Source: Cyanophora paradoxa CCMP329
Taxonomy: Eukaryota; Plantae; Glaucophyta
Direction: 5' to 3'
Assembly: GCA_004431415.1 (NCBI GenBank)
Contig: QPMI01000105.1
Coordinates: 1 to 47,925 of the forward strand
DNA: 47,925 bases
Under the pieces are notes generated by a model. That model searched no databases. It worked only from the letters and a program-made list of their open reading frames with translations, and was not told the DNA's origin. A program made the translations under genes and the position numbers. The first letter of the stretch is position 1. Each line of letters begins with the position of its first letter. Positions 4,815 through 45,260 of this stretch are shown here, in pieces.

Positions 4815-5187
4815 GAATCATCTTCCCACGCGGACCCAAACTTTTCAAATAAGCTGAAGGTCAAGAATTTGTCTACCAAGGACTGGTCTTCTCGTTCAAG
4901 AATGGTATAAGGAAGACGCCATAGATCATTCTTGTCCATGGTTACATTTATCTCGTTTGATCTCCCGTTTGACAAGACTTGAATCAGAAGAGTGTGCGCA
5001 AATATGTCAACATTGAATCCCTCTTTCTCTAGAGCGCCGATTATATTTTTTTTGATAGATTCTGCAGTATATTTCAGTGATCTGTGCACGAGGCCGAACA
5101 TACATATTGCCACTCGCACAGACTTCGAATCCGAGCAGACGTCTGATTTATACATTTCGACAGCATTGTGACGACAGCATTTCTTCC
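4815..5187 (-). pseudogene. N-terminal half of an uncharacterised, possibly glycosyltransferase-like gene, cut by LTR A
   Basis: RVAICMFGLVHRSLKYTAESIKKNI...DIFAHT...GSAWEDDS. The frame runs into the LTR start exactly at 4814. Function is inferred only from recalled motif pattern. Confidence 0.7.
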
Positions 5188-5333
5188 ACTGAGTGACTTG
5201 CTGGTGGGTGGGTTCATCTGCCTAAGGATAGCACCTTGCATGTTCCCCCAAAGAGATTTGGAGTGCCTCTTTCTTCTATTTTGTGTCAGATTGGAAACCT
5301 GGGGTTGACTGAGTGACTTGCCGGTCGGTAGAC
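5188..5333 (-). repeat. S2 satellite fragment
   Basis: Reverse complement of the 124-bp monomer. Confidence 0.9.
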
Positions 5334-5539
5334 AACCACCACTGCCGCACATTCAGCTTCAGTAGCCGGCATATTCTTTTCCGAATTCTTCCATTTCCTG
5401 CTGTAGAAATAAACTGGCTTGAGTATTCCATCATGCTCTTGTGACAATATTCCACCAATGCCTTTATCACAAGCATCAGTTTCTAAAACGAAAGCTTTAT
5501 TAAAATCTGGATAATGCAACATCGTTGCTGCTTATAAAT
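5334..5539 (-). pseudogene. Gypsy RNase H fragment (relative of family C)
   Basis: PDFNKAFVLETDACDKGIGGILSQ...YSRKW...TEAECAA, similar to 26190-26345. Confidence 0.85.
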
Positions 5540-8280
5540 CACAAAAACATTCCAGGGGGAACATGCACAAGGCGCTAGCCTTAGGCTGGTGCACCCTGCC
5601 GAGCAGAGCCCCTGTAAGACGCTCTGCCCTTCCAAGTGGGAGCCCCCCCAGTGTTTGGGGACTTGAATGTTTCCTGCGTTCACTCCCTCTTAGCCCTGGT
5701 CAGTTTGAATTCCCATCGGGCCCACAAAACCAAGGTCAGGTGCACACAAAACCTTTCTAGGGGGAACATGCACAAGGCGCTAGCCTAAGGCTGGTGCACC
5801 CTGCCCAGCAGAGGCCCTGTACGAGGCTCTGTTCTTCCATGTGGGATCCCCGCCAAGTATTTGGGAGGGTAGGCAGGTGCACCCTGCCCAGCAGAGGCCT
5901 GGTACGAGGCTCTGCCCTTCCAAGTGGGTTCCCCCCAGTGTTTGGGGATTTGAATGTTTCCTGGGTTCACTCCCTCTTAGCCCTGGTCACTTTGAATTCC
6001 CGTCTGGCCCACAAAAGCAAGGTCAGGTGCACACAAAACCTTTCCAGGGGGAACATGCACAAGGTGCTAGCCTTAGGCAGGTGCACCCTGCCCAGCAGAG
6101 CCCCTGTAAGACGCTCTGCCCTTCCAAGTGGGAGCCCCCCCAGTGTTTGGGGACTTGAATGTTTCTTGGGTTCACTCCCTCTTAGCGCTGGTCAGTTTGA
6201 ATTCCCGTCGGGCCCACAAAAGCAAGGTCAGGTGCTCACAAAAACATTCCAGGGGGAACATGCACAAGGCGCTAGCCTTAGGCAGGTGCACCCTGCCCAG
6301 CAGAGCCCCTGTAAGACGCTCTGCCCTTCCAAGTGGGAGCCCCCCCAGTGTTTGGGGACTTGACTGTTTCCTGGGTTCACTCCCTCTTAGCCCTGGTCGG
6401 TTTGAATTCCCGTTGGGCCCACAAAAGCAAGGTCAGGTGCACACAAAACCTTTCCAGGGGGACCATGCACAAGGCGCTAGCCTTAGGCTGGTGCACCCTG
6501 CCCAGCAGAGCCCCTGTAAGACGCTCTGCCCTTCCAAGTGGGAGCCCCCCCAGTGTTTGGGGACTTGAATGTTTCCTGCGTTCACTCCCTCTTAGCCCTG
6601 GTCAGTTTGAATTCCCATCGGGCCCACAAAACCAAGGTCAGGTGCACACAAAACCTTTCTAGGGGGAACATGCACAAGGCGCTAGCCTAAGGCTGGTGCA
6701 CCCTGCCCAGCAGAGGCCCTGTACGAGGCTCTGTTCTTCCATGTGGGATCCCCGCCAAGTATTTGGGAGGGTAGGCAGGTGCACCCTGCCCAGCAGAGGC
6801 CTGGTACGAGGCTCTGCCCTTCCAAGTGGGTTCCCCCCAGTGTTTGGGGATTTGAATGTTTCCTGGGTTCACTCCCTCTTAGCCCTGGTCACTTTGAATT
6901 CCCGTCTGGCCCACAAAAGCAAGGTCAGGTGCACACAAAACCTTTCCAGGGGGAACATGCACAAGGTGCTAGCCTTAGGCAGGTGCACCCTGCCCAGCAG
7001 AGCCCCTGTAAGACGCTCTGCCCTTCCAAGTGGGAGCCCCCCCAGTGTTTGGGGACTTGAATGTTTCTTGGGTTCACTCCCTCTTAGCGCTGGTCAGTTT
7101 GAATTCCCGTCGGGCCCACAAAAGCAAGGTCAGGTGCTCACAAAAACATTCCAGGGGGAACATGCACAAGGCGCTAGCCTTAGGCTGGTGCACCCTGCCC
7201 AGCAGAGGCCCTGTACGAGGCTCTGCCCTTTCAAGTGGGATCCCTGCCAAGTGTTTGGGGACTTGACTGTTTCCTGGGTTCACTCCCTCTTAGGGCTGGT
7301 CAGTTTGAATTCCCGTTTGGCCCACAAAAGCAAGGTCAGGTGCACACAAAACCTTTCCAGGGGGACCATGCACAAGGCGCTAGCCTTAGGCTGGTGCACC
7401 CTGCCCAGCAGAGGCCCTGTACGAGGCTCTGCCCTTTCAAGTGGGATCCCTGCCAAGTGTTTGGGGACTTGACTGTTTCCTGGGTTCACTCCCTCTTAGG
7501 GCTGGTCAGTTTGAATTCCCGTTTGGCCCACAAAAGCAAGGTCAGGTGCACACAAAACCTTTCCAGGGGGAACATGCACAAGGCACTAGCCCTGTGAGAG
7601 GCTCTGCCCTTCCAAGTGGGATCCCCTCCAGTGTTTGGGGACTTGAATGTTTTCCTGGCTTCACTCCCTCTTAGGGCTGGTCAGTTTGAATTCCCGTCGG
7701 GCCCACAATAGCGAGGTCAGGTGCACACAAAACCTTTCCAGGGGGAACATATACAAGGCGCTAGCCTTAGGCAGGTGTACCCTGCCCATCAGAGGCCCTG
7801 TACAAGGCTCTGCCCTTCCAAGTGGGAGCTCCCCCAGTGTTTGGGGACTTCAATGTTTCCTGGGTTCACTCCCTCTTAGCCCTGGTCATTTTGCATTCCC
7901 GTTGGGCCCACAAAAGCAAGGTCAGGTGCACACAAAACCTTTCTAGGGGGAACATGCACAACGGGGTAGTTTTAGGCAGGTGCACCCTGCCCAGCAGAGC
8001 ACCTGTAGGAGGCTCTGCCCTTCCAAGTGGGATCCCTGCCGAGTGTTTGGGGACTTGAATGTTTCCTGGGTTCACTCCCTCTAAGCCCTGGTCAGTTTGA
8101 ATTCTTGTCGGGCCCACAATAGCGAGGTCAGGTGCACACAAAACCTTTCCTGGGGGAACATGCACAAGGCGCTAGCCTTGTGCATGTTCCCCCTGCCCAG
8201 CAGAGGCCCTTTAAGAGGCTCTGCCCTTCCAAGTGGGACCCCCACCGAGTGTTTGGGGACTTGAATGTTTCCTGGGTTCA
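5540..8280 (+). repeat. S1 satellite array (~205-206 bp monomer, ~13 copies) with a 902-bp higher-order duplication
   Basis: Recurring monomer at 205/206 spacing. Identical ORF starts at 5785/6687, 5794/6696 and 5841/6743. Confidence 0.97.
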
Positions 8281-9797
8281 GCTCCGAACGTAATCATAGA
8301 CATCGCGACGCAAGTTCTTCCAATAGTAACGAGATGAGACAAGATCGATCAACTTGGTCACTCCAGGATGTCCGAAATTGTCATGAAGAGCCCGAAGGAC
8401 CTGTTGAGTCATGGAGTACGGAACAACGACTTGAAAAGAATCAGCTCCAGTTCGTTGGCGACAAAGAACATCGCACTTCAGTACGAATTTCCCACTCTTG
8501 AGTGTTCGCTCCACTGACTTGTCCACGCCCTCAGGCAGGACAAGCACATCATCTTCAAGATACCTGATGATGGTGTTGAGCAACGGATCCTCAAGTTGAG
8601 CAGCTCTAATATCAGAAGCAGAAAGAGATAAGTCAAGCTCAACTGCATTCACAAGAATAGGGATGGGAATGATAGGAGAAATGAGAGACAACTCCTCAAT
8701 CTTGGCAACAACTCGCTTCACAAGTCTTGAAAGTGCATCGGCATCAGCATTCAGGGTACCAGACTTGTGCGAAATTTCATAATTGTACTCCTGCATTCCA
8801 AGAATGCAGCGGGCAATCCGAGCATTTGGGAACTCCTTATTCGACTTCATATACTGGAGAGCACTGTGATCCGACTTGATGAAGAACTTGGGGCCTTTCA
8901 GATAATGTGAGAACTTTTTAGTCACAGCCCAGTAAACAGCATGTAACTCCTGCTCAGTAACTGTCCACTTCTGTTGCTCATCTGATAATGGTTCAGCAGC
9001 ATATGCAATAACAACCTCCTTGTTCCACTTGCACTCAGCTGGGGTGAGTGTCTTAGAAGCAAATGAAATGACTCGCTCCTGACCATTGTCATCCAGCTGC
9101 GACAAGACAGCACCAATGCCAGTTTTCGAAGCATCTGTTTTGAGGATAAAAGGCTTCTTGAAATCTGGAAATGCCAGAAGAGGAGAGGAACATAACAACT
9201 CCTTAAGCTTCCCGAAAGCAAAGTCTTGTGATTCTCCCCATACAAACAAATTCTTGGATTTCAGCAAATCATATAATGGAGAAGCAATGATTGCACATGA
9301 AGGTATGAAGACCCTGTAGTAATTGACAAGACCTAGGAAAGACCTGACTTCTGATACAGATGTTGGAGTCTTGAAATTCTTCACAGCCTGAACTTTGCTG
9401 TCACAAGGCTTGATTCCTTCTCGGCACACAACAAATCCAAGGTACTCAGCTTCAGCCTTGAAGAACCAACACTTGCGTGCTTTTAACCACAGGTGAGCAG
9501 CAATCAGCTGATCAAAAACCCATTCAAGATGTTCGAAATGTTCTGTCAGACTCCTAGAAAAGACACAATATCATCAAGATACACAAGAATAAAGATATAG
9601 AGGTACGCTCCTAACACTCCATTCATCAACATCTGAAATGTCGCAGGGGCTGTTTTGAGGCCCTGCGGCATGACATTCCACTCATACAAACCAGTTGGTG
9701 TCCTAAAAGCTGTCTTCAACCGATCCTTTTCACTCATCTTGACATTCCAATATTTATCATCACAATCTGCAACAGAAATATATATGGATCCAGAAAG
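8281..9797 (-). pseudogene. pol: Gypsy pol fragment, family D (RT-RNase H-start of integrase), frameshifted near 9560
   Basis: MPQGLKTAPATFQ, YLDD, LKTDASKTGIGAVL, NADADALSR, LHDNFGHPG. Truncated by satellite at both ends. Confidence 0.92.
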
Positions 9798-10131
9798 AGC
9801 AGGGTGCACCTGCCTAAGGCTATCCCCTTGTGCATGTTCCCCCTGGAAAGTTTTTGTGTGCATATTCCCCTAGAGAGATTTGAGGCGGATCTTTCTTTCA
9901 TTTTCTGGCAGATCAGAAACCTGGGGCCTTTGACTGAGTGACTTGCTGGTGGGTGGGTCATCTGCCTAAGGCTAGCGCCTTGTGCGTATTCCCCCAGAGA
10001 GATATAGGGGTGCTTTTTTTCTATTTTCTGGCAGAATGGAAACCTGGGGCCTTCGAGAGAGTGACTAGCTGATGGGTGGGTCATCTGCCTAAGGCTAGCG
10101 CCTTGTGCTCTTTCCCCCTGAGAGATTTGGG
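9798..10131 (-). repeat. S1-to-S2 satellite block
   Basis: Partial S1 monomer then ~2 S2 monomers, reverse orientation. Confidence 0.9.
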
Positions 10132-10315
10132 GATGCCTGGGGGTGCCCTTCTCGGGATGGCGGTAGGGCTGCAGCTCTGCGGAGCCAAAGCCAAAGGCTA
10201 GCACCCTGTGCATTTTTGTCTGAAAGTTTTTTCCCACCAACAACTTTTCAGGGGGCCAGACAGGGTCCAACCCCCTGTTTTTCAAAAACCGGCGAAAGAC
10301 TGTTTTTCGGTGAAA

Positions 10316-11527
10316 ATGGATTCTTTTGGGTTTTTTTCAAAACAGCCTCATTTTCCGTCGAAGATGCTCGTCGGACGTCCCAACCTGGGATCTTTCGAGC
10401 GCTTCCAGCAGTATCTGCATTCGATTTGGGATTCAAGGATTTTGACGAACCAAGGCCCTCTTCTACAAGAATTCGAAAAGAAGCTCTGTGATTTTTTAAA
10501 TGTGAAGCATTGTATTTGCGTTTGTAATGCCACCGTTGGCCTGGAATTGGCACTAGAAGCCTGCGATGTTAAAGGCGAGGTCATAGTCCCCGCCTATACA
10601 TTTATTGCCAGTGTCCACGCAATCCACGCTCGCAAACTGAACGTGAAGTTTTGTGACGTTGATCCCGTGACACACGTTATAGATGTGGAAAGAGTTCGAG
10701 AATTATTGAATCCAGCAACTTCAGCTGTTCTTGGAGTCCATTTGTGGGGAACAGCGTGCGATGTTGATGGGCTTCAAGAGCTCGCGAGAGAGCATAATCT
10801 GAAATTGATTTTTGATGGTGCGCATGCGTTCGGATGTTCAACGAAAGGTAAACCTCTGGGGAGTTTTGGTGATTGCGAAGTCTTCTCTTTTCACGCAACG
10901 AAATTTTTGAATTCATTTGAAGGTGGTGCCATCACAACAAACTCCGATGAACTAGCCAGAAAACTGAAACTGCTGCGCAATTTTGGATTTGTTGGCACCG
11001 ATCAAGTCATATCTTGGGGAACAAACGCGAAAATGACAGAGATTTGCGCTGCAATGGGTCTTACATCGCTTGACGGTATTCAAGATTTTATAACCATGAA
11101 CAAGAACAATTATCTTCTTTACAAAAAGCACTTGGCTGATGTTCCTGGGATCCGTCTTTATGATTACCCGTTGGACACGCCGCATAATTATCAGTACATT
11201 GTCCTTGAGGTCTCAAAAGAAGAGTTTGGAATCAACAGGGATCAGCTCGTCCAGCTTCTCGAATCTGAAAATGTTTTCGCAAGGCGATACTTCTTCCCCC
11301 CATGTCACCAAATGGAACCTTTTGCAAGCCAAGGATTCGACAAAGTACACTTACCCTCCACTGAAATTCTCAGCCAGAAAACTCTATGTCTCCCTAATGG
11401 CACGTCTGTGACACAAGGAGATGTAGACGAGATATGTTCAATTATTAAGCTTGCACACAAACAATCGCAAAGCCTTGTGTCTGTGATTCCTTCAAAATGT
11501 TTTTACCCGATGAACAAACTTGTTTGA
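10316..11527 (+). CDS. DegT/DnrJ/EryC1/StrS PLP-dependent sugar aminotransferase (DesI/VioA-like NDP-4-keto-6-deoxyhexose aminotransferase)
   Basis: VGRPNLG, EVIVPAYTFIAS, DGAHAFG, FSFHATK (PLP lysine), EGGA, NAKMTEICAAMGLTSL, RRYF. Intact and intronless. ATG 10316 is preferred over GTG 10208, which lies in a decayed satellite core. Confidence 0.93.
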   Translation: MDSFGFFSKQPHFPSKMLVGRPNLGSFERFQQYLHSIWDSRILTNQGPLLQEFEKKLCDFLNVKHCICVCNATVGLELALEACDVKGEVIVPAYTFIASVHAIHARKLNVKFCDVDPVTHVIDVERVRELLNPATSAVLGVHLWGTACDVDGLQELAREHNLKLIFDGAHAFGCSTKGKPLGSFGDCEVFSFHATKFLNSFEGGAITTNSDELARKLKLLRNFGFVGTDQVISWGTNAKMTEICAAMGLTSLDGIQDFITMNKNNYLLYKKHLADVPGIRLYDYPLDTPHNYQYIVLEVSKEEFGINRDQLVQLLESENVFARRYFFPPCHQMEPFASQGFDKVHLPSTEILSQKTLCLPNGTSVTQGDVDEICSIIKLAHKQSQSLVSVIPSKCFYPMNKLV

Positions 11528-11643
11528 TACAATTTAGGAAAGTGCTAACGAAGCTCATCAAGGAGGTGCTTGAAGGGCAACTGTGTGTGCCGGGAGCATT
11601 CATCAAGACACTGAACATTCGTATACATTCAAAAACATCCAAC

Positions 11644-13336
11644 CGCTAGCCTTAGGCAGGTGCACCCGGCCCACATGAGGGCAGGATGCACCTGCCTTCC
11701 CACTTGGAAGGGCAGAGCCTCGTACAGGGCCTCTGTTGGGCAGGGTGCACCTGCCTAAGGCTAGCGCCTCGTGCACGTTCCCCATGGAAAGTGTTTTTGT
11801 GCACCTGACCTCCTGTTGTGGGCCCGACGGGAATTCAATTCAAACTGACCAGGGCTGAGAAGGAGTGAACCCAGGAAACATTCAAGTTCCCAAACACTTG
11901 GTGGGGGCCCCACTCCGAATGGTCCCACAGGAATGGCTAAGCCTCTTGTGGGGCCACAGCTGGGAAGGGTGTACCTGCCTTGGCTAGCGCCTTGTGCATG
12001 TTCCCCCTGGAAAGGTTTTGTGTGCACCCGACTTCCTGTTGCTAGCCTGAGGAAGATGACCCGCCCACCTGCAAGTCACTCAGTCGAATGCGCCTTGTGC
12101 ATATTCCCCCAGAGAGATTTGGGGTGCATTTTTCTTCTTTTTTCTGGGAGATTGGAAACCTGGGGCCTTCGACTGAGTGACTTGCAGGTGGGTGGGTCAT
12201 CTTCCTAAGGCTAGCGCCTTCTGCATATTCCCCCAGAGAGATTTGGGGTGCATCTTTTTTCGATTTTGTGGCTGATTGGAAACCTGGGGCCTTCGACTGA
12301 GTGACTTGCAGGTGGGAGGGTCATCTTTGTAAGGCTGGCGCCTTCTGCATATTCCCCCAGAGAGATTTGGGGTGCATCTGTTTTCGATTTTGTGGCTGAT
12401 TGGAAACCTGGGGCCTTCGACTGAGTGACTTGCAGGTGGGTGGGTCATCTGCCTAAGGCTAGCGCCTTGTGCATATTCCCCCAGAGAGATTTAGCCGATG
12501 GCTAGCGCCTTGTGCATATTCCCCCAGAGAGATTTGGAGTTCATCTTTCTTCTTTTTTCTGGCAGATTTGAAATCTGGGGCCTTAGACTGAGTGACTCGC
12601 AGGTGGGTGGGTCATCTTCCTAAGGCTAGCGCCTTGTGCACATTCCCCCAGAGAGATTTAAGGTGCATCTTTCTTCTGTTTTGCCACAGATCGGAAACCT
12701 GGGGCCTTCGACTGAGTGGCTTGCTGGTGGGTGGGTTCATCTTCCTAAGGCTAGCGCCTTGTGCATATTCCCCCAGAGAGATTTGGGGTGCATCTTTCTT
12801 CTATTCTCTGGCAGATTGGAAATCTGGGGCCTTCGACTGAGTGACTTGCTTTGAGGTGGGTCATCTGCCTAAGGCTAGCGCCTTCTGCATACCAAGAGAG
12901 ATTTTGGGTGCATTCTTTTTATATTTTGTGGCCTTCGACTGAGTGACTTGCACGTGGGTGGGGCATCTGCCTAAGGCTAGCGGCTTGTGCATATTCACCC
13001 AGGGAGATTTGGGGTGCATCTTTTTTCTATTTGGTCACCTGAGCAGAAACCTGGGGCCTTTGACTGAGTGACTTGCATTTGGGTGGTTCATCTCCTTAAG
13101 GCTAGCGCCTTGTGCATATTCTCCCAGAGAGATTTGAAGTGCATCTTTCTTCTATTTTGTGGCGGATCAGAAACCTGGGGCCTTTGACTGAGTGACTTGC
13201 TGGTGGGTGGGTCATCCTCCTAAGGCTAGCGCCTTGTGCATATTCCCCCAGAGAGATTTGGGGTGCATCTTTCTTCTTTTTCCTGGCAGATTGGAAACCT
13301 GGGGCTTTTGACTGAGTGACTTGCAGGTGGGTGGGT
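11644..13336 (-). repeat. S1 (to ~12040) then S2 satellite, mostly reverse, with short forward patches at 11644 and 12041
   Basis: Monomer matches. Both forward patches begin at the core GCTAGCC. Confidence 0.93.
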
Positions 13337-13339
13337 TGG

Positions 13340-14393
13340 GGGGCGTGGCCAACGTTGATGTATACGTATGTCTAACGCCCTCGCACGCTTCGTCAGTTTG
13401 CCTGTCGCGATCCACGCTGGTTTTGCCAGCATGTGCACCCTAGCGTCCTTTGCGTCTCTGTAGCCCGCAGCTGGCAACTTTTGCGAGATGAGTGGTGCGC
13501 ATGTCTTGTTTCCCGGGACTCGTCACTAAGCTTACTCGTCGAGTCGTGCAGATGGGCTGTGCCCCGAGCGGAAGATGCCCTGCCCCGAGACGCATGCGGG
13601 CCGCTGTAAGTGATCCAGTGATTGATCGAGCCACCCGTAATACACCCCGCAGACACCAAGCGGCTGAAGAGACAGAAAACCTCTGAATCTGACTACGTGC
13701 ACCCTTTCGATGCCGGCGAACTTTTGGTTGGCCTTGCGAGGTCACTTGCAACCTTTTGGGTTCTTCTTCAAATCATTACTCAGACCAACGTACCGCCGAG
13801 GCCGAGGCCACCAGGCCTTCTGAGTCGTGAGCGACTGAAAGCTGTTTTTATCGGCTTTCTGCTTATTCTTTGTGGTGGATTGCAGCCGCGGGCAAAGAAC
13901 GTCTCCACTGCAGAAGCCGTGCACACTCACGGCCTGCGAGCCTGCCACGTTGCTCTCGCCAAGGCCATGGCGCAGTTTTGATCTCAGTAGGCGCAAGTGG
14001 AGTTGTGCCGCCTGGTCAAGCAGCATGGGTGCCGGTGAGCGACGAGGGATGCTCAAAAATTGAGCACATTCCTGAGAAGGAACGGAGTGCTGTCAAACAT
14101 CTCATTGTGAAGTCCCAGCTCAAAGCAACTGAAGCTCAACTGTCAGCGTCTGCCTACCATGGGGTTCTCAGAGCATTCCAGAGTCAGCTCTACACCTTTG
14201 CTGGCAAGTTCTCTTTCGAGTTCGGTGATTGTGAAGAAATGGTTCAGCTAGAGCAAAAGCTGCACATTGCTGGTCTGGAGGATCTCGCCAGTCTGCAGCC
14301 AAATCTTCACGTCGTTTTCTGTCGTTGTGTTTCCGACATCTGGCCCGCATCACACTTCACGTGCCCCAGCTTCACACAGCCTCTGATGCCACT
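13340..14393 (+). other. Unique ~1-kb island, possible gene fragment
   Basis: Non-repetitive. The frame 13870-14406 reads protein-like in its second half, but no family was recognised. Confidence 0.25.
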
Positions 14394-15030
14394 CCCAGGT
14401 ATCTGATCTGCCACATAATACAAGAAAGATGCACCCCTCATCTCTCTGGAAGAATATGCACAAGGCCCTTGCCTGAGGCAGATGGCCTACCCATCAGCAA
14501 ATCACTCAGTCGAAGGCCCCAGTTTTCTGATCTGTGATAAAATAGAAGAAAGATGCACCCCAAATCTCTCTGGGGGAATATGCACAAGGCCCTAGCCTTA
14601 GGAAGATGAACCCACCCACCAGCAAGCCACTCAGTCAAAGGCCCCAGGTTTCTGATCTGCCAGGTTTCCGATCTGCCACAAAATAGAAGAAGAATGCACC
14701 CAAAATCTCTCTGGGGGAATATGCACAAGGTGCTAGCCTTAGGCAGATGGCCTACCCACCGGCAAATCACTCAGTCAAAGGCCCCAGGTTTCCAATCAGC
14801 CACAAAAAAGAAGAAAGATGCACTCCAAATCTCTCTGGGGGAATATGCACAAGGCGCTAGCCTTAGGAAGATGAACCCACCCACCAGCAAGCCAATCAGT
14901 GAAAGGCCCCAGGATAAGGATCTGTGACAAAAAAAAGAAAGATGCACCCCAAATCTCTCTGGGGGAATATGCACAAGGCACAATCCTTAGGAAGATGACC
15001 CACCCAAAAGGAAGTCACTCAATCAAAAAC
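14394..15030 (+). repeat. S2 satellite array
   Basis: About 5 monomers. Confidence 0.95.
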
Positions 15031-16160: not shown

Positions 16161-17231
16161 ATGCTTTGGATATGGCAACAAAAACGTACCAAGATTAGAT
16201 TATGCACCATTGCGACCTGTATACTTCTGTATGTTGTATTCCAATTTCTTTATGCGATTCAAAGCAAGCAAGTTGTTGAGCACCTGCAGCAAGATTTCGC
16301 CACGTCGGCGTCCATCGCGTATGCCGATTCTTTCCCTGATGGATTGACGGATCGTCGCCCAGTAATTCTCGGATTCCCTTTCTTGCACGAGCTCGATCTG
16401 CTACACGTCAAGCTCGAAATCCTGCAGCATGTCGTAAGTATCTTCATTGTGTCTGAATCGTGTTACACACAGAGAGGTTTGCCTAAACCTTTGCATTTCT
16501 TCGAAGCCAGGCATGAACCTCGATTTGTGAAGTTCCACAACCGCATTGTTCATGTAAATGATTGCGACCCACCTGGTGCAGTCGATGACGCACTGGGGTG
16601 GAGACATGAACGCAAGGTGAAAAGCAATATTGTCTTAGCGCTTCGAAACCTGTCATTTACGGAAGGGATTGTGATTATTGGTGATGCAGACGAGATTCCC
16701 TCCCCAGAAGCCGTACTTTGGCTCCAGAAACACCTCAATTACTCCGATACTTTTGAGTTCGCGACAACTATGCATCATTTTGTTTATGGATTCATGTGGA
16801 TAGCAAGAGACCACCACTATTCCACTATGACAGCAAGAACGTTGCAGCAAGAATTGAGATTCTGGGCTTCGAAATTTCATAACCGACCGTTTTCCCAAAA
16901 TGTACGACCGCTTGGAATGCATCCTAGTGGTTGGCATTGCTCGTATTGCATTGAGGAAAATCTGATTTTAGAGAAAATACAGTCTGCAAACACTGTTGAT
17001 GGCCCTCTTATCTTAAGTTCTTTAGATTGGACTCTACTCGATATTCAGGAATTCAAGTCTTGCGGAAAAACTTTACAGGGAATGATACTTACGCCTACAA
17101 AGATTCAGCTGAACTCCTCCTCCCTGTCTTTGTACCCCTATCTTACATCTTTGCCCTCGCCAATTTCAATTGACTGCCAGAATTTGCGACTACCAAAAAA
17201 GATGGCGAAGAAGCCCAAGCAGTACTCGTAA
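16161..17231 (+). CDS. Glycosyltransferase family 17 (MGAT3/GnT-III-like), type II membrane protein
   Basis: Short basic tail plus TM helix, ELDLLHVKLEIL..VVSIFIVSES..T.RG.PKPL, IIGDADEIP (DxD), GWHCSYC. Intact and intronless; first ATG at 16161. Confidence 0.88.
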   Translation: MLWIWQQKRTKIRLCTIATCILLYVVFQFLYAIQSKQVVEHLQQDFATSASIAYADSFPDGLTDRRPVILGFPFLHELDLLHVKLEILQHVVSIFIVSESCYTQRGLPKPLHFFEARHEPRFVKFHNRIVHVNDCDPPGAVDDALGWRHERKVKSNIVLALRNLSFTEGIVIIGDADEIPSPEAVLWLQKHLNYSDTFEFATTMHHFVYGFMWIARDHHYSTMTARTLQQELRFWASKFHNRPFSQNVRPLGMHPSGWHCSYCIEENLILEKIQSANTVDGPLILSSLDWTLLDIQEFKSCGKTLQGMILTPTKIQLNSSSLSLYPYLTSLPSPISIDCQNLRLPKKMAKKPKQYS

Positions 17232-17247
17232 TTTGTAACTGTTTCGA

Positions 17248-17745
17248 AAAGAAAAGAAAGAGATCAATCAGGGTCCCTTCATGGCTGGAGCCAAGAGGCA
17301 TGGACCATCTGGCGGCAGCCCTCAGCAGGCGAACCACACTCCTTAGGACCAGCAAGAAAGTAACTCCCTTGCCGTGAGAAACGTCTTTGAGCTCAGTCCA
17401 TGGTCCAGTGAAACGATGGGAAAGCTTATCAGACCGCCAATTGGAAGGGGTCTTTACAGCAACAACTTCGCCAGGTATGAAAACTGATGGAGGGACAATG
17501 CTGCTGCTTGGCGAGGTACTTCTCTTTAGCTTGCTGGATATCACTATAAATCCGAGAGAAACGCCGTGCCAGCGTAGCTGGACAACCAGAAGGCTCTGAA
17601 GTTGTCACTTGAACTTCAGGAGTTGCCAGCAAGTCTACTGGAAGAGAAAAAGGTTCTCCATACAACCTTTCGAAAGAATTATAGCGAAGAGAGCGAACGG
17701 GAGAGAGAGCCCGTGTCGAAGCATTTTTGTCAATATAGCCTCCAA
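17248..17745 (-). pseudogene. Deleted integrase C-terminus/3' end of an A-like element
   Basis: LPVDLLATPEVQVTTSEP, SDKLSHRFTGPW; homologous to 42110-42640. Confidence 0.88.
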
Positions 17746-18057
17746 CAGGGCCACAGCTGGGGGTCACAGCTGGGCGGGTTGCACCTCCCCAAGGCTAGCG
17801 CCTTGTGCATTCTCCCCCTGGAGAGGGTTTTGTATGCACCAGACTCCCTGCTGTGGGCCCACCAGGAATTCAAAATGACCCGGGCCAGGAAGGAGTGAAC
17901 CCAGGAAATTCAAGTCCCCAAACACTCGGTGCAGGTCCCACTTGGATTGGCAGAGCCTCTTACAGGGCCTCTGCTGGGCAGGGTGCACCTGCCTAAGGCT
18001 AGCGCCTTGTGCATGTTCCCCCTGGAAAGGTCTCGTGTGCACCTGACCTTGCTGTTA
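17746..18057 (-). repeat. S1 satellite
   Basis: About 1.5 monomers, reverse. Confidence 0.92.
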
Positions 18058-34248: not shown

Positions 34249-34249
34249 A

Positions 34250-35081: not shown

Positions 35082-36257
35082 TCACTGCGGATGTACTTTT
35101 TGCTCGGAGATAGAGTCAACTAAAGTTATCGTGTTCAGATTTTCCTGTGCGATTTCTTCTTGCAAGTCCGTCGTGTCTAAGAAATTGCGAATGTTAATAC
35201 CGTCAACTGGTCCCTGGTACTTCTTCTGTATATCTTCGAGGTCAGCTTTTACCATAATTTCAGCTAGATCATCGAGAGAAGTTGCTGATTTCCAACCGAG
35301 CAATGTATTCGCCTTCTGGCAATCCCCCAGCAAAAATTCAACCTCAGCAGGTCTGAAAAAATCCGGTGAAACTTTTACTACCTCCTTCCCAGTGCTTATG
35401 TCAATTCCAACTTCGTCAATACCACTTCCTTTCCAAAGTATATCAATACCAGCATGCTTGAATGCCAGTGCTGCAAAATCCCTCACAGATGCAGATCTTC
35501 CAGTTGCAAGCACGAAATCATCGGCCTCTTTGTGTTGGAGAATCATCCACATGCCATGAACGTAATCTTTAGTGTAGCCCCAGTCACGTTTAGCATTCAA
35601 ATTTCCGAGAGTTATGTGCTCTTGAAGGCCCAGTTTGATTCTCGCCACAGCCCTCGAGATTTTTCTGGTAACAAAGTGAGTGCCTCGCCGAGGACTTTCA
35701 TGATTGAAAAGAATGCCGTTGGAGGCGAACATGCCGTATGCCTCCCGGTAATTAACGACAGTCCAGTATGCAAATACTTTCGCGCATCCGTAAGGGGATC
35801 GAGGATGAAAAGGTGTTGTTTCGGATTGTGGAACTTCGCGCACTTTACCATACATTTCTGATGTTGAGGCTTGGTAGAATTTCACACCGGGCCTGCGCTG
35901 TCTTATCACTTCCAAGATGTTTTGTACTGCGGTGCCGTTTGCAGCAGTTGTATATTGAGGATTGTCAAACGAGACTTTCACGTCACTCATTGCCGCAAGA
36001 TTGTAGAACTCATCGGGCATACAAAGAGTAATGATTCTCTCGATGCTGGTTACGTCGAGGAGATCACCGTAATGAAGATGTAAACGACGGCCGAGGAGAA
36101 CCGGGGTCAGAAGATGTTTGATACGCGAACCGTGCATGTCACTCGAATGCCTGACAATTCCGTGTACAATGTAGTCCTTCTCAAGCAGTAGCTCAGCCAA
36201 ATAGCTTCCATCTTGCCCAGTGATACCTGTGATGACTGCAACTTTCCGATGGGCCAT
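35082..36257 (-). CDS. gmd: GDP-mannose 4,6-dehydratase
   Basis: ITGITGQDGSYLAELLL, YQASTSEMYG, PRSPYGCAK (YxxxK), NGILFNHESPRRG, LGNLNAKRDWG, RPAEV. Intact, intronless, with a ~45-aa C-terminal extension. Confidence 0.97.
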   Translation of the reverse strand: MAHRKVAVITGITGQDGSYLAELLLEKDYIVHGIVRHSSDMHGSRIKHLLTPVLLGRRLHLHYGDLLDVTSIERIITLCMPDEFYNLAAMSDVKVSFDNPQYTTAANGTAVQNILEVIRQRRPGVKFYQASTSEMYGKVREVPQSETTPFHPRSPYGCAKVFAYWTVVNYREAYGMFASNGILFNHESPRRGTHFVTRKISRAVARIKLGLQEHITLGNLNAKRDWGYTKDYVHGMWMILQHKEADDFVLATGRSASVRDFAALAFKHAGIDILWKGSGIDEVGIDISTGKEVVKVSPDFFRPAEVEFLLGDCQKANTLLGWKSATSLDDLAEIMVKADLEDIQKKYQGPVDGINIRNFLDTTDLQEEIAQENLNTITLVDSISEQKVHPQ

Positions 36258-36386
36258 TGTTGAATCAGTTTTGCCAATCAGTCTGGGTTACGCCGCAAGT
36301 GTAAAAGTCAGGAACGCCCCGAATGCGCCCAGCAGAGCGGCTTTTTTCTGGCTTCACGTGGCCCTGTTCAAATCGTGCCCTATCAT

Positions 36387-38096: not shown

Positions 38097-39402
38097 CTCT
38101 TGGCCTTGTCCAGGAAACAATTGTCCATGTTAACTCATCCTCGAAGTAGGTGACAAGGAGAGCCTGTCCTTGTCAACGCTACTACTCCATTCAAATGGTC
38201 TTCACTCCTCCAATCACTAGTGTGTAGTGATTAACCCGCTCCATCCAACTCCAGACTCCAAGGACACTTTTAACAGATGAACCACTGTCCAGCAAATCTT
38301 GGAATCCTCTGGTCTCCTGCAAATGCTGGGAGTGCACCAAAGAGGAAGATGTGCTGGGAGCTTGGCTGACTCGTGAGTAGCGCACTGTGCATCATTGCAT
38401 GTCCAGAGTCCAGCAATTATAGATGAAGGTAGGCAACTTCTTGTACATGTCCAACAGTGGTGACCCTTCTGCACCAAGAATACAGTCCTGCGATTCCAGC
38501 TTTGGCAATCCAGGAAAAACAAATCATCGAATGTGACATCCTGGGAAAACAAATCTCCGACATGCACCAAGAAATAAGAGAAGCTTTGAGCTGCAAGTAG
38601 TACACAGAGGAAACACTGTGCTGCAAGACAATTCTTAGGCCTTTTCAAGTGTACATCTACGTTCGGAAGCAGAAAGACTACGAGCACCTAGAAGACATCT
38701 AGCAGGAACCACTGCGAAGGGAAAAGTGCCAATGCACTACCTGCGAATGCAGGCCACAGCAGTGTGCATACGTCTCGAAGTACTCGTTGTCAATCCTTCC
38801 CGTGTGAAACGCGACAGCCCTTTCGAGAATATTCCCAGTTTCGCGAAATGCGAATGCACTTCCCCAGCGACTGGTATGAAGAACAACGTGCGAATGCACG
38901 GACCATCCCTGTCAAAACAGAGACATGGGCTTGTCGAGCCAGCACGAGAACCACGGCTTCAATAATGAAAACGTGATATAGCGGAATGTAATCCATGCGA
39001 AACCAGAGCGTCGCTCGCTCTGTGGTAGAAAAAAAGAAGACGATGGCCGACAACGGAAAGTGAAGCGTACGACATACGAGTATGGGAAAGCATTCCAATG
39101 AGCCTAGCACGGAAAAAAATAGGTAGCTGTATTTTGTGCACACCTGTTCGAAGGAATAAAAAAAAAACAGCATGTGCACGGGAATCGTTCCGCGGCGGCC
39201 CCCAATTGAGATGAAGCAGCTGGATGAATGTGGCTGCGATAAGCTGCTGCATCCCAAGGTGTGCTAGACTACATTAGAGATGCATTCATTTATTCATGGG
39301 ACAACCCAAGACTAACCCTCACACCAAGACACTGCAAGGGGAAAGGGGGAGAACTAGGTACACTAAAGAGGGAACAGGGGAGAGTCACTACGCTTCACAA
39401 CA
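38097..39402 (-). mobile_element. Element B, partial copy (5' LTR start at 39402 plus internal region)
   Basis: Starts TGTTGTGAAGCGTAGT, like LTR A; duplicate of 43553-44857. Confidence 0.7.
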
Positions 39403-39804
39403 ATTCAACAAGATTTTCATCTTTACATAATCTTCTTCGTCAACTGTATTCTTTGGAGAAGTCGTGGAATCTGATGGCTCGATATTCTAGTGCATGCAAG
39501 ATTACGTCTGATTGCTTGTATGAAGAACCAATCAGCCTGAAGCAACTAAACATTCATGAAAACGATCTTTTTATCCCCCCATTCACACCAGACGATCAGT
39601 ATAATGACCGTCTTGCAATAGGAAGCAGTTATTCAACATTTTTAGCTGCTAACAGAAGGTTTTCCACACTTGCTTTTTGCTCTGCGCAAACTCCTGCAAG
39701 ACCATTGCATTCCGAAATTCTTTTGTATAACAACCTGCAGCACCACAATGTGACTGTTCGTAGATCCCATTTAAGGTTCTGCAGGGTGAGATCAACAGGA
39801 ATTG
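39403..39804 (+). pseudogene. C-terminal half of the split glycosyltransferase-like gene (copy 1)
   Basis: STRFSSLHNLLRQLYSL...IPPF..YNDRLAIG...PLHSE...RFCRVR. Starts at ATTC right after the LTR B terminus. Confidence 0.7.
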
Positions 39805-39857
39805 GCGTAGCACCACAATGTGACTGTTCGTAGATCCCATTTAAGGTTCTGCAGGGT

Positions 39858-40986
39858 GTCATCTCCCTAAGGCGCTAGCCTTAGGGAGATGACCCACCCA
39901 CCAGCAAGTCACCCAGTCAGAGGCCGCAGGTTTCCGATCTGCCACAAAATAGAAGAAGGATGCACTTCAAATCTCTCTGGGGGAATATGCACAAGGCGCT
40001 AGCCTTAGGCAGATGACCCACACAAAACCTTTCCAGGGGGAACATGCACAAGGCGCTAGCCTTAGGCTGGTGCACCCTGCCCAGCAGAGGCCCTGTACGA
40101 GGCTCTGTTCTTCCATGTGGGATCCCTGCCTAGTGTTTGGGGACTTGAATGTTTCCTGGGTTCACTCCCTCTTAGCGCTGGTCAGTTTGAATTCCCGTCG
40201 GGCCCACAAAAGCAAGGTCAGGTGCTCACAAAAACATTCCAGGGGCAGATGACCCTCCCAAAAGCAAGACACTCAGTCAAAGGCCCCAGGTTTCCGATCT
40301 GCCACAAAATAGAAGAAGGATGCACTTCAAATCTCTCTGGGGAATATGCACAAGGCGCTAGCCTTAGGCAGATGACCCTCCCAAAAGCAAGACACTCAGT
40401 CAAAGGCCCCAGGTTTCCGATCTGCCACAAAATAGAAGAAGGATGCACTTCAAATCTCTCTGGGGGAATATGCAAAAGGCGCTAGCCTTAGGCAGATGAC
40501 CCTCCCAAAAGCAAGTCACTCAGTCAGAGGCCCCAGGTTTCAGAAAGATGCACCCCAAATCTCTCTGGGGGAATATGCAAAAGGCGCTAGCCTTAGGCAG
40601 AGGACCCACCCACCAGCAAGTCACTCAGTCCAACTCCGCAGGTATCCGATCTGCCACAAAATAGAAGAAACATGCACCCCAAATCTCTCTGGGGGAATAT
40701 GCACAAGGCGCTAGCCGTAGGCAGATGACCCACCCACCAGCAAGTCACTCAGTCGACGGCCCCAGGTTTCCGATCTGCCAAAAAGAGAAGAAAGATGCAC
40801 CCCAAATCTCTCTGGGGGAACATGCACAAGGCGCTAGCCTTAGGCAGATGACCCACCCACCAGCAAGTCACTCAGTCATAGGCCCCTGGTTTCTCATCTG
40901 CCAGAAAATAGAAGAAAGATGCACCCCAAATCTCTCTGGGGGAATATGCACAAGGCGCTAGCCTTGGGCAGATGACCCACCTACCA
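39858..40986 (+). repeat. Mixed S2/S1/S2 satellite
   Basis: One S1 monomer (40021-40245) embedded in S2. Confidence 0.95.
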
Positions 40987-42620
40987 GCAGCAGAAGTGGA
41001 CAGTCACGGAGCAGGAGTTGTATGCAATTTGGTGGGCGGTCACCAAGAAGTTCCCTCAGTATCTCCGTGGCAAGAAGTTCATTATCAAGTCTGATCACTC
41101 GGCTCTTCAATATTTGAAATCGGCTAAGAAGTTGCCCAGTGCTGGCATCACTCGCTGGATTATGGATATGCAAAAGTTTGATTTCGAAATCCAGCACAAG
41201 CCTGGCAAATCTAATGCCGATGTGGATGCTCTTTCTCGCCTTGTGCGAGTTGCAGTTCTTTCCTTGGAAGCGATGGAGTTTTCTTCTAATTTTTCGAGCG
41301 CTTTCTTGGATGCAATTGAGTTGCAGTTGAGTTTGCCCCCGGCTCGAATTCGGGATGAGCAAATAAATGATGTTAATTTTGGCGGATATGATTAAGTATT
41401 TGGAATCAGATATTACTATTGAACCGCAAGGTGTCAACAAGGAGGCCGAACGCCAACTCAAGAGCGGCAAATTCTCTGTACAAGATGGCGTTCTCGTCCA
41501 CACTCGGCCTTCGGACAAACTTGTGCGTATTTGCGTACTTGATCATCTCAAATCAACTATTCTGTCATCGGTACACCGCACGCTCGGACATCCTGGAGTC
41601 GGCAAAATGTACAATCATCTCAAGCGGCGGTACTACTGGCGGAGTATGTTTTCTGATGTCGCTACATTTGTTTCGACATGCGCCGATTGCCAGCGTGTCA
41701 AGAATTCCAAGACTGTACAAGCGGTTCCTCAATTTGAGATTCATGCTGACCGGCCGATGCAGCACTTGGAAATTGACATCGTCGGGCCTTTTCCGAAGTC
41801 GAAGCAAGGCAACAAATATCTGATTACTATTATCGATGTTTTTACGCGTTGGTGCCATGCGGTGCCCGCGCGAACGAAGTCGGCTATGTCCGTCGTTCGG
41901 GCGTTGTTCGACCACTGGATTCCCCTCCATGGAGTCCCCGCCAAGATTTCGTCGGATCAGGGCGGCGAATTCAAGAATTTGCTTCTTAATGAACTAGAGC
42001 GTCTTTTTGGAATAAAGGCGGTCTTTTCTTCTTCTTATCAACCGCAGTCTCAAGGTGCTGTGGAAAAATTGAATGACACTTTGGTCACTCGCCTACGGTT
42101 TTACATTGACAAGAACGCTTCGACATGGGATCTCTCTCTCCCGTTTGCGCTCTTCGCAGTTCGCAATTTCGTTAATCCTATTACTGGACACACTCCTTTT
42201 GAAATGTTGTATGGGAGGCCTTGTACTCTTCCTGTGGACTTGCTGGCTACTCCTGAAGTTCAAGTGACAACTTCTGAGCCTACCGGTTACCCAGCCGTGT
42301 TGGCTCGGCGGTTCTCTCGCATTTATACCGATATTCAGCAAGCTAAGGAGGAATATCTTGCTAAGCAGCAGCAGCGGCCTTCTCAACCAGTTTTCATTCC
42401 TGGAGAAGTTGTTGCTGTTAAGACCCCTTCCACTCGGCGGTCTGATAAGCTTTCCCATCGTTTCACTGGACCTTGGACGGTGCTTAAAGATGTTTCTCAT
42501 GGCAAGGGAGTTACTTTCTTGCTGGAGTATTCTGGTCCTAAGGAGCGTGGTTCCCCTGCTGAGGGCTCGCGCCAAATGGTCCATGCCTCTCGGCTCAAGC
42601 CTTGGAAGGACCCTGATTGA
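40986..42620 (+). pseudogene. pol: Family A pol 3' fragment: end of RNase H plus complete integrase ORF (41367-42620)
   Basis: HHCC, DDE and GPW motifs; ends HASRLKPWKDPD with no chromodomain; followed by PPT GGAGGAGAG (42683-42691). Confidence 0.93.
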
Positions 42621-42692
42621 TCTCTTTCTTTTCTTTTCCTTCCTTGGACTTGGCCAGCGCGGACGTGGCCTTTTTCTTACTTGGAGGAGAGT

Positions 42693-42976
42693 TGTCGCGA
42701 AGCGTAGTTCCCCTTCCCTTTCGCCGTAGCGAATGTAGCATGTACGTTAGTGATACCCCGTCCTTCGTGTAGGGGAACAGCGGCGCGTGGGGCGGGGGGC
42801 AACCCCCTCCCTGCCTGGCCGGACCTATCCGAGCAAATTTTTTTTTTCCTTCGTGTAGGGGTATGTCATTCAATCATACGCGGATATTACGCGTGTGCGC
42901 ACGTGCGTCCCGGCACAGCACTGCGCCGTGTGCGGAAGTGGCTGAGAACCCATCGTATAGCTTGTAACAGCTTCTT
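42693..42976 (+). repeat. 3' LTR of family A, truncated
   Basis: TG start after the PPT; homologous to 4814-4618. Confidence 0.88.
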
Positions 42977-42984
42977 ATCATCAT

Positions 42985-43183
42985 TGTTGTGAAGCGTAGT
43001 GACTCTCCCCTGTTCCCTCTTAGTGTACCTAGTTCTCCCCCTTTCCCCTTGCAGTGTCTTGGTGTGAGGGTTAGTCTTGGGTTGTCCCATGAATAAATGA
43101 ATGCATCTCTAATGTAATCTAGCACACCTTGGGATGCAGCAGCTTATCGCAGCCACATTCATCCAGCTGCTTCATCTCAATTG
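42985..43183 (+). repeat. Partial LTR B, inverted relative to 43184-43278
   Basis: Reverse complement of ~39203-39402. Confidence 0.85.
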
Positions 43184-44857
43184 CAAGACTAACCCTCACA
43201 CCAAGACACTGCAAGGGGAAAGGGGGAGAACTAGGTACACTAAGAGGGAACAGGGGAGAGTCACTACACTTCACAACAATCGCTCTGTGGTAGAAATGCC
43301 CACGTCCTCGCTGGCCCAATGATAATAGAAGAACAGCTACAATGCTCTAAGATGCGAATGCATCGATACTCTGCACATCTTCACTCGCACTGACCATGTG
43401 GACTTCAGATGAGAGGACATCACTCAGCAATGAGAAGAAGCACAACCAAAGCTGGCCTGTTGTCAAAACAACCTTTGACCATACAATCAACTCCAGAGCG
43501 AGAAAACAGCATGCCCATCATGCGACAGAGCCTGTAACATCAATCTTGGCAACTCTTGGCCTTGTCCAGGAAACAATTGTCCATGTTAACTCATCCTCGA
43601 AGTAGGTGACAAGGAGAGCCTGTCCTTGTCAACGCTACTACTCCATTCAAATGGTCTTCACTCCTCCAATCACTAGTGTGTAGTGATTAACCCGCTCCAT
43701 CCAACTCCAGACTCCAAGGACACTTTTAACAGATGAACCACTGTCCAGCAAATCTTGGAATCCTCTGGTCTCCTGCAAATGCTGGGAGTGCACCAAAGAG
43801 GAAGATGTGCTGGGAGCTTGGCTGACTCGTGAGTAGCGCACTGTGCATCATTGCATGTCCAGAGTCCAGCAATTATAGATGAAGGTAGGCAACTTCTTGT
43901 ACATGTCCAACAGTGGTGACCCTTCTGCACCAAGAATACAGTCTGCGATTCCAGCTTTGGCAATCCAGGAAAAACAAATCATCGAATGTGACATCCTGGG
44001 AAAACAAATCTCCGACATGCACCAAGAAATAAGAGAAGCTTTGAGCTGCAAGTAGTACACAGAGGAAACACTGTGCTGCAAGACAATTCTTAGGCCTTTT
44101 CAAGTGTACATCTACGTTCGGAAGCAGAAAGACTACGAGCACCTAGAAGACATCTAGCAGGAACCACTGCGAAGGGAAAAGTGCCAATGCACTACCTGCG
44201 AATGCAGGCCACAGCAGTGTGCATACGTCTCGAAGTACTCGTTGTCAATCCTTCCCGTGTGAAACGCGACAGCCCTTTCGAGAATATTCCCAGTTTCGCG
44301 AAATGCGAATGCACTTCCCCAGCGACTGGTATGAAGAACAACGTGCGAATGCACGGACCATCCCTGTCAAAACAGAGACATGGGCTTGTCGAGCCAGCAC
44401 GAGAACCACGGCTTCAATAATGAAAACGTGATATAGCGGAATGTAATCCATGCGAAACCAGAGCGTCGCTCGCTCTGTGGTAGAAAAAAAGAAGACGATG
44501 GCCGACAACGGAAAGTGAAGCGTACGACATACGAGTATGGGAAAGCATTCCAATGAGCCTAGCACGGAAAAAAATAGGTAGCTGTATTTTGTGCACACCT
44601 GTTCGAAGGAATAAAAAAAAAACAGCATGTGCACGGGAATCGTTCCGCGGCGGCCCCCAATTGAGATGAAGCAGCTGGATGAATGTGGCTGCGATAAGCT
44701 GCTGCATCCCAAGGTGTGCTAGACTACATTAGAGATGCATTCATTTATTCATGGGACAACCCAAGACTAACCCTCACACCAAGACACTGCAAGGGGAAAG
44801 GGGGAGAACTAGGTACACTAAAGAGGGAACAGGGGAGAGTCACTACGCTTCACAACA
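43184..44857 (-). mobile_element. Element B: non-autonomous LTR element (5' LTR from 44857, decayed internal region, truncated 3' LTR from 43278)
   Basis: Two same-orientation LTR starts 1579 bp apart. The 3' UTR motif GGCCAGCGnGGACGTGG is shared with A. Relic knuckle and LLDSG motifs inside. Confidence 0.72.
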
Positions 44858-45260
44858 ATTCAACAAGATTTTCATCTTTACATAATCTTCTTCGTCAACT
44901 GTATTCTTTGGAGAAGTCGTGGAATCTGATGGCTCGATATTCTAGTGCATGCAAGATTACGTCTGATTGCTTGTATGAAGAACCAATCAGCCTGAAGCAA
45001 CTAAACATTCATGAAAACGATCTTTTTATCCCCCCATTCACACCAGACGATCAGTATAATGACCGTCTTGCAATAGGAAGCAGTTATTCAACATTTTTAG
45101 CTGCTAACAGAAGGTTTTCCACACTTGCTTTTTGCTCTGCGCAAACTCCTGCAAGACCATTGCATTCCGAAATTCTTTTGTATAACAACCTGCAGCACCA
45201 CAATGTGACTGTTCGTAGATCCCATTTAAGATTCTGCAGGGTGAGATCAACAGGAATTGT
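44858..45260 (+). pseudogene. C-terminal half of the split gene (copy 2)
   Basis: Duplicate of 39403-39804, ending in S2 satellite. Confidence 0.7.

Follow-up and report, generated by a model that had tools for sequence, protein, structure and literature searches.

Glycan enzymes are common cargo of giant viruses, and descriptions of viral or bacterial genes imported into algae usually portray them as methylated and silent. Likewise, expressed genes in heterochromatin and repeat-rich 'two-speed' genome compartments are well known. Insertions of giant viruses, termed giant endogenous viral elements (GEVEs), have been published for algae including the glaucophyte Cyanophora paradoxa, where most viral genes are reported to carry methylation and to be silent, prokaryote-derived genes being silenced less often (PMC12344493); the published genome of this alga has a guanine-cytosine (GC) content of 67.6%, and its genes are rich in introns (PMC6704402). 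Here, we describe a stretch of C. paradoxa CCMP329 DNA (contig QPMI01000105.1; hereafter the window, 47,925 bases with ~49% GC, within which all counts and copy numbers were determined) that harbors three intact, intronless genes for a DegT-family aminotransferase, a GT17-like glycosyltransferase and a GDP-mannose 4,6-dehydratase (GMD) as well as a broken fourth transferase gene, all of them embedded in satellite DNA and retroelement fragments. We hold with moderate confidence that these genes would be what is left of a single glycan gene cluster that was acquired horizontally, most likely via a large DNA virus and with enzymes ultimately of bacterial type, and then eroded to expressed islands.

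The locus resembles GEVEs in that intronless genes of foreign composition are clustered in the host genome among methylated repeats. However, the window contains no viral hallmark gene and only four genes, each isolated by satellites, and at least two of these are expressed, whereas reported GEVE genes are mostly methylated and silent. The GMD, DegT and GT17-like families also occur together in viral and bacterial surface-polysaccharide clusters (IMG/VR loci L050, L077, L080 and L130). These are compact co-directional operons, in which the GT17-like protein comprises ~275 amino acids (aa), lacks a membrane anchor and is ~30% identical to the window protein; in contrast, the window genes are spread out among 30 kb of eukaryotic repeats, with transcripts of single genes. 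With heterochromatic genes and 'two-speed' compartments the locus shares functional genes amid satellites and transposons in a quickly rearranging compartment, yet the window genes are tiny, intronless, foreign and of one biochemical theme, and repeats approach their coding sequences to within 14-130 bp. Bacterial contingency loci, that is, phase-variable surface-glycan genes, likewise link surface-glycan enzymes with repeats. Unlike these, the window shows neither hypermutable tracts nor on/off frame variants or variant copies, and its repeats are long satellites located outside the genes.

Employing Tandem Repeats Finder and self-comparison of the window, we identified a pair of related satellites with unit lengths of 124 bp (S1) and 206 bp (S2) and a common core of 50-75 bp. 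Sequence that has no match elsewhere in the window falls into a few islands, three of which are nearly filled by one open reading frame (ORF) each. These unique islands are 1.2-1.6 kb in length and bordered by S1, S2 or a gypsy-type retroelement fragment. The original prediction, made from the letters of this DNA, had named the aminotransferase, GT17 and GMD genes as intact and intronless, had placed them in small islands with short unique flanks and had described all copies of the retroelement pol gene as damaged. These claims hold: the three genes match their Pfam families with E-values of 3.8e-101, 4.8e-21 and 1e-134, respectively, the flanks measure between 14 bp and ~176 bp, and every pol-type ORF is partial (146-464 aa). 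The ratio of observed to expected CpG is 0.21 in S2 and 0.31 in S1, and 0.93-0.95 in the three intact genes, a contrast as if unmethylated islands were placed inside methylated repeats.

The aminotransferase gene (10316..11527, plus strand) encodes a DesI-like sugar 4-aminotransferase of 403 aa and occupies the island 10140-11697, with ~95-176 bp of its own 5′ flank and 118-170 bp of its own 3′ flank. The match to PF01041 (DegT_DnrJ_EryC1; 339 bits) covers profile positions 5-359 of 360, the pyridoxal phosphate (PLP)-lysine motif SFHATK is present and the protein retains 113 of the 126 columns that are highly conserved in the family. The best solved relative is DesI of Streptomyces venezuelae, a dTDP-4-keto-6-deoxyglucose 4-aminotransferase (PDB 2PO3, 358 bits). 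The DegT/PLP fold and the lysine motif are common to DesI, to the GDP-perosamine synthases 3BN1 and 3DR4 and to the window protein, but the perosamine synthases score only 186-189 bits. TIGR04427 (DesI-type dTDP-4-dehydro-6-deoxyglucose aminotransferase) was the best NCBIfam family with 466.3 bits, which is under its equivalog cut-off of 650. Judged from these scores, the enzyme is DesI-like rather than perosamine-synthase-like, and its product is most likely a 4-amino-4,6-dideoxyhexose nucleotide sugar. The closest relatives are 49-55% identical, and the best of them (55%) is encoded in a bacterial polysaccharide operon with a PglD-type acetyltransferase and several glycosyltransferases as neighbors.

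The gene for GMD (35082..36257, minus strand; 391 aa) lies in an island spanning about 35045-36385, with 128 bp of its own 5′ flank and 37 bp of its own 3′ flank. The Pfam family GDP_Man_Dehyd is matched over profile positions 2-332 of 332, and the protein reaches 489.9 bits with TIGR01472, the gmd equivalog family, exceeding the cut-off of 415. Moreover, the short-chain dehydrogenase/reductase signatures GxxGxxG, catalytic Thr/Glu and YxxxK are present as GITGQDG, STSEMYG and YGCAKVFAYW, and the protein agrees with the family at 130 of 138 highly conserved columns. The enzyme is predicted to make GDP-4-keto-6-deoxymannose. We observed a C-terminal tail of ~46 aa (35082-35220, minus strand) that is not found in relatives, and an altered cofactor loop (residues 36-44), in which the conserved RR is changed to RH and FNT to MHG. 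The closest relatives, with 60-64% identity, are encoded in bacterial operons. In the GMD tree, the window protein has a terminal branch of 0.92, compared with a median of 0.18, and no supported sister; among solved GMDs the plant enzyme is the most distant (342 bits), the human enzyme scoring 412 bits.

The gene for the GT17-like glycosyltransferase (16161..17231, plus strand) encodes 356 aa including an N-terminal hydrophobic membrane anchor, and matches PF04724 (Glyco_transf_17) with 75.6 bits against a gathering threshold of 26. Its island (16063-17245) contains ~99 bp of its own 5′ flank and only 14 bp of its own 3′ flank, where an inverted gypsy integrase fragment (17246..17768, minus strand; 84% identity to 19654-20153 and 42102-42638) starts 14 bp past the stop codon. 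The motifs GDADEIPS and GWHCSYC are conserved, and D175, D177, E178, P180, H259, C260 and C263 are invariant or nearly so in a comparison of 18 family members, among them the window protein. The PDB contains nothing related in sequence to the window GT17, and a scan of IMG/VR with this single protein yielded no relatives.

GT17 is usually regarded as a eukaryotic family. The window GT17 shares 24-28% identity with the GT17 of animals, fungi and plants, and close relatives with about 39-51% identity numbered only 13 in 5.8 billion proteins, all of them uncultured. In the phylogenetic tree, the window GT17 falls into a clade of uncultured proteins with 100% support, the sister of which (91%) is a clade from IMG/VR viral contigs. 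This window clade stands apart from the tick, chytrid and water-lily GT17 and is not nested in the cellular eukaryotic, MGAT3-type GT17. The contigs encoding the close relatives are gene-dense, mixed-strand and filled mostly with ORFans, together with glycan enzymes of the families GT61, GT8 and GH5, an unproven virus-like pattern with an unusually rich glycan toolkit. On two of them, L106 (94-1701, 3157-7965) and L105, we observed an MGAT2-GT17 fusion, a 1603-aa GT25-LicD-Stealth-STELLO protein and a PEP-mutase/decarboxylase fusion.

The three intact genes have a GC content of 44-46% and a GC content at third codon positions (GC3) of 0.42-0.47, compared with 67.6% GC in the genome. Since CpG is not depleted in these genes, methylation-driven decay does not explain their low GC. 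Together with the lack of introns in an intron-rich genome, the bacterial or virus-like relatives and the long terminal branches, this composition makes it very likely that the gene set was acquired horizontally, as had been considered possible before, and the coherent set of deoxy/amino-sugar and glycosyl-transfer genes that had been suspected in the field is indeed present. All four recognizable genes are glycan genes, and the simplest reason for this would be their joint arrival.

This combination of genes was compared with loci from IMG/VR and metagenomes that had been chosen solely for a GT17-like gene and were then searched with the other proteins of the window. Sixteen of the 80 IMG/VR loci carry a true GMD (39-56% identity over at least 280 aa) within 10 kb, and a DegT aminotransferase within the same distance was likewise found in 16 of 80. 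A family scan of three such loci revealed clusters of GMD, epimerases, GT2, GT11, GT17 and DegT, one set also containing PhoH and 6-phosphogluconate dehydrogenase (6PGD), which presumably points to cyanophage-like genomes. Thus, the combination of GT17-like, GMD and DegT genes is a known kind of viral and bacterial gene cluster. In addition, we noted that short GT17-like genes (~275 aa) are frequent in viral contigs (228 confirmed stretches), where GMD, GT11, GT2, radical-SAM and DegT genes often lie with them in one co-directional cluster (L130, L050, L077, L080).

Evidence for transcription was drawn from four studies, which provided six contig sets of small size (6-33 million letters) that were guessed to be RNA. 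All DNA-size contig sets of the organism contain the aminotransferase island, and 0.91-1.00 of its words occur in the six RNA-type sets. Four of the latter were aligned on positions 11300-17299, a stretch outside of which GMD lies. The RNA contigs of the aminotransferase are 1494-1649 nt in length, unspliced and all end at 11727. For GT17, gap-free and unspliced contigs span 16032-17275 and 16042-17275 in two studies, thereby extending 30 nt into the integrase fragment at 17246, and pieces were found in the other two. GT..AG splice joints occur in two of the four sets, indicating that at least two of them are RNA, and in none of the four does any contig cover the unique non-genic stretch 15100-15699 (zero depth), which argues for RNA in the other two as well. 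Hence, the aminotransferase and GT17 genes are transcribed without splicing, with message ends that lie at or inside repeats. Since assemblies break at repeats, the contig ends are not to be read as transcript ends, and we therefore do not claim that the satellites act as promoters. No shared promoter-like motif was seen by eye in the gene flanks, and upstream ATG codons are absent from all three 5′ leaders of the intact genes. Furthermore, words of S1 reach high depth in the RNA contig sets, and in two sets another contig starts exactly at 17246, preceded by GC-rich letters that do not occur in the window; it may represent a chimeric transcript, or a spliced transcript from elsewhere with the same integrase fragment.

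The RNA contigs of two studies also contain the joints of a low-level spliced transcript (13349..14457, plus strand) with four GT..AG introns of 47-59 nt (~13494-13550, 13606-13652, 13726-13782 and 13827-13885). It sits in a 1-kb island (13338-14390, 55% GC) between inverted S1 arrays, and its exons have a GC content of 0.51-0.73, richer than the foreign genes. For the ORF of the last exon (13870-14406, 178 codons), no match was found in Pfam or PHROG with the exons examined singly. Thus, not every transcribed unit of the field that lies outside of transposable elements is an intronless glycan gene. The original prediction, which had stated this for every recognizable gene, is correct for the four glycan genes but had overlooked this transcript. 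Its author had also named, as an outcome that would speak against it, that the genes might be silent neutral copies of ordinary host loci; the mRNAs of the aminotransferase and GT17 show that at least these two are not silent.

The fourth gene is broken into two halves, and the glycosyltransferase-like gene suspected in the field is thus real. Matches of its relative P0262 in tblastn searches place the N-terminal half of a DUF7796-like transferase at 4823..5155 on the minus strand (ORF 4778-5155; P0262 residues 37-143, 50% identity, 1.7e-31), without the membrane anchor that relatives have. The first copy of the C-terminal half is located at 39405..39833 on the plus strand (ORF 39261-39833; P0262 residues 150-294 at 39414-39803, 41% identity). 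The second copy, at 44860..45294 on the same strand (ORF 44716-45294; P0262 match 44869-45285), lies in the segmental duplication 38097-40978 / 43553-46395. The C-terminal ORF has a sub-threshold match to DUF7796 in Pfam. An exhaustive profile-free search yielded 48 relatives, with P0262 (305 aa) and P0263 as the best, whereas a scan of IMG/VR with P0262 as single protein gave none. Likewise, exact-sequence look-ups of P0262, P0263 and the window aminotransferase and GMD in the contig collection gave no match. The AlphaFold model of P0262 has a predicted local distance difference test (pLDDT) value of 89, and its best PDB matches are GT6 enzymes (BoGT6a, GTA/GTB and alpha-1,3-galactosyltransferase; probability 1.0, template modeling score 0.40-0.55). 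One relative is fused to a Nucleotid_trans (nucleotide-diphospho-sugar transferase) domain. On the basis of this model, the family is a GT-A-fold transferase family.

The break between the halves falls within ~5 codons. A distance of 34.6 kb, which includes the three intact genes, separates them, and they lie on opposite strands. The broken end of the N-terminal half (4814) adjoins a gypsy long terminal repeat (LTR; TKT...TCA) at 4614..4813 on the minus strand, downstream of which gag and protease ORFs follow on the same strand (4187-1561); the same LTR recurs after the integrase at 42695-42980. Correspondingly, the broken end of the C-terminal half (39405) adjoins the start of a second gypsy-type LTR, which runs leftwards from 39404 toward reverse-transcriptase/RNase H fragments. 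Both broken ends thus adjoin the 5′ start of a gypsy-type LTR, and 2-4 letters (TTC or ATTC) are found at both. These LTR starts, together with the opposite strands of the halves, indicate that the break involved retroelement integration plus inversion. The duplication of the C-terminal half is later than the break and copied an already broken piece.

A single clean 34.6-kb inversion was rejected as a full account of the split, because both ends lie at LTR starts and the element next to the C-terminal half has three different neighbors. In the window, the start of this LTR is joined to the transferase half, to the end of another LTR and to unique DNA. The junctions are located at 4813/4814, 39404/39405, 42980-42983, 43183/43184 and 43280/43281, with a 98-bp fold-back at 43183/43184. 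This pattern suggests end-to-end joining or targeted integration of retroelements.

The satellites of the window are interspersed with gypsy-type retroelement fragments in both orientations. The largest S2 array spans 5540..8285 (plus strand), and further pieces lie at 11645-12041, 15320-15498, 15787-16061, 17769-18053, 34251-35044 and 36386-36639. S1 forms an array at 45261..47925 (plus strand) and others at 9802-10136, 11975-13336, 14394-15042, 23439-25734, 29158-31453, 33687-34235 and 39869-40987. Each pol-type ORF represents only part of the protease, reverse transcriptase, RNase H and integrase set, and no whole gypsy pol copy was found among the pol ORFs of the window, the longest of which has 464 aa. 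Self-comparison further revealed two segmental duplications with about 98.8-99.9% identity, 22376-28041 = 28094-33759 (5.7 kb) and the tandem 2.9-kb duplication that contains the C-terminal half of the broken gene; both are very recent.

Taken together, we propose that one glycan cluster would have been imported together, most likely via a large DNA virus. Satellites and retroelements would then have expanded and rearranged around the genes, eroding unique DNA to the units protected by selection. Three genes would have survived as minimal islands, two of them transcribed as unspliced mRNAs, and the fourth would have been cut at a retroelement junction, its halves being inverted relative to each other and one of them being duplicated later. 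The two copies of the C-terminal half support erosion to selected units: they are 99.9% identical and differ exactly at the satellite border (39804-39868 vs 45260-45284), where copy 2 lacks 65 bp of the unique 3′ DNA of copy 1 and contains 24 bp of S1 in addition. This difference indicates that the satellite border moves and that unprotected unique DNA is lost. In terms of biochemistry, the aminotransferase would turn dTDP/UDP-4-keto-6-deoxyglucose into a viosamine-type sugar or, with lower probability, the GMD product into perosamine, and the GT17-like enzyme would transfer a sugar in the secretory pathway.

Several observations weigh against this proposal. As to the vehicle, Pfam searches of the ORFs of at least 150 aa and of the scanned smaller ORFs outside transposable elements found only gypsy domains and the glycan genes, and no giant-virus hallmark gene (capsid, packaging ATPase or polymerase), in this 48-kb window. 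Only in their gene density and ORFan content do the contigs of the GT17 relatives resemble viruses, and IMG/VR searches with two ORFans from these contigs yielded no relatives. The viral contigs that pair a GT17-like gene with GMD have a phage-like or bacterial look (co-directional overlapping ORFs, PhoH, 6PGD), their GT17 being ~30% identical. Moreover, bacterial proteins are closer to the window aminotransferase and GMD than any IMG/VR protein (43-55%). As to foreign origin, the gypsy ORFs of the field have GC and GC3 values as low as those of the glycan genes, and composition alone thus does not settle the question. The window proteins keep 89-94% of the highly conserved family columns, fewer than any relative tested alike, which fits a fast-evolving lineage. 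Finally, a 20-bp S2 direct repeat at the GMD island is better explained by insertion into an array that already existed than by erosion.

The latter observation leads to the first alternative, in which the genes were cargo of mobile cassettes, satellite-bearing transposons or other insertions, each of them having landed separately in existing arrays, hence the short flanks. The GMD island interrupts an S2 array of single orientation, and the S2 phase 178-197 is found on both of its sides (35026-35045 and 36386-36405), forming an imperfect direct repeat with 17 of 20 matching positions. This repeat resembles a target-site duplication, although known cut-and-paste elements produce far shorter ones. 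However, an overlap of 20 bp in a 206-bp unit is expected by chance in ~10% of cases, the 3′ end of GMD has no poly-A tail, and neither phase continuity of S1 or S2 nor a flanking duplication was found around the other three islands. Separate insertions would also leave unexplained that all four genes fall into a single functional and compositional class, and we consider this scenario rather unlikely.

Similarly improbable, in our view, is the second alternative, that these are ordinary long-resident host genes, native or derived from ancient bacterial transfers, which reside in a repeat-rich compartment, their low GC reflecting a local mutational regime. The shared GC and GC3 of the gypsy ORFs, the expression of the genes and the strict equivalog cut-off that GMD passes are in line with this explanation, as is the less frequent silencing of prokaryote-derived genes in C. 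paradoxa (PMC12344493). In contrast, the glycan genes lack introns, whereas the genome is intron-rich and a neighboring transcript of the field has four. Furthermore, CpG is undepleted in the glycan genes, the GT17 falls outside the cellular eukaryotic GT17, the plant enzyme is the most distant solved GMD, and four glycan genes together are unlikely by chance.

According to the original prediction, the field would be a contingency-type surface-glycan locus that is actively shuffled and amplified in satellite DNA, GMD feeding the aminotransferase to yield perosamine. The recent 5.7-kb and 2.9-kb duplications (99.9%) and at least one inversion are consistent with a field in motion, and DesI-type enzymes place the C4 amine in the equatorial position, the same as in perosamine. 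However, each of the three intact genes occurs only once in the window and none of them is part of a segmental duplication, and the sole amplified gene piece is the dead C-terminal half. Tandem Repeats Finder revealed no tandem or simple-sequence repeats inside the coding regions or leaders of the intact genes, and across the RNA contigs of four studies no variant letters occur in GT17 or in 428 bases of the aminotransferase gene and its 3′ flank (11300-11727). Rearrangement in this field destroyed a gene and did not diversify one. As the aminotransferase is DesI-like and not perosamine-synthase-like (358 bits with DesI vs 189; 466 bits with TIGR04427 against 650), its link to GMD is possible, but not indicated. 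Both parts of this claim therefore fail to find support in the data, and we regard such a locus as very unlikely.

The least credible explanation is that the genes are the decaying, silent remains of a viral insertion and now serve no function: it would be in line with reports of mostly methylated and silent viral genes in C. paradoxa (PMC12344493), with the loss of one of four genes and with the window proteins being more changed at conserved positions than their relatives, but it is contradicted by full-length unspliced RNA contigs of the aminotransferase and GT17 in several studies, by intact catalytic motifs, by frames that stay open while every neighboring pol is broken and by undepleted CpG.

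Beyond the window, the imported cluster might belong to a dispersed, genome-wide reservoir of several sets of virus-derived glycan genes in the satellite and retroelement compartment, with satellite monomers serving as promoters and the quickly rearranging repeats allowing surface-sugar enzymes to be gained, lost and reshuffled in an arms race against viruses or predators. We give this extension little credence; if it were true, this algal compartment would parallel the repeat-rich effector compartments known from plant pathogens. At the locus itself, at least two of the presumably imported genes are transcribed although CpG-depleted satellites and broken retroelements come as close as 14-130 bp. 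This arrangement opens the way to test how single small active genes are kept up in heterochromatin-like DNA and whether satellites may act as promoters. Moreover, given that the glycans of glaucophytes are poorly known, it allows one to ask whether imported glycan enzymes may alter the glaucophyte cell surface.

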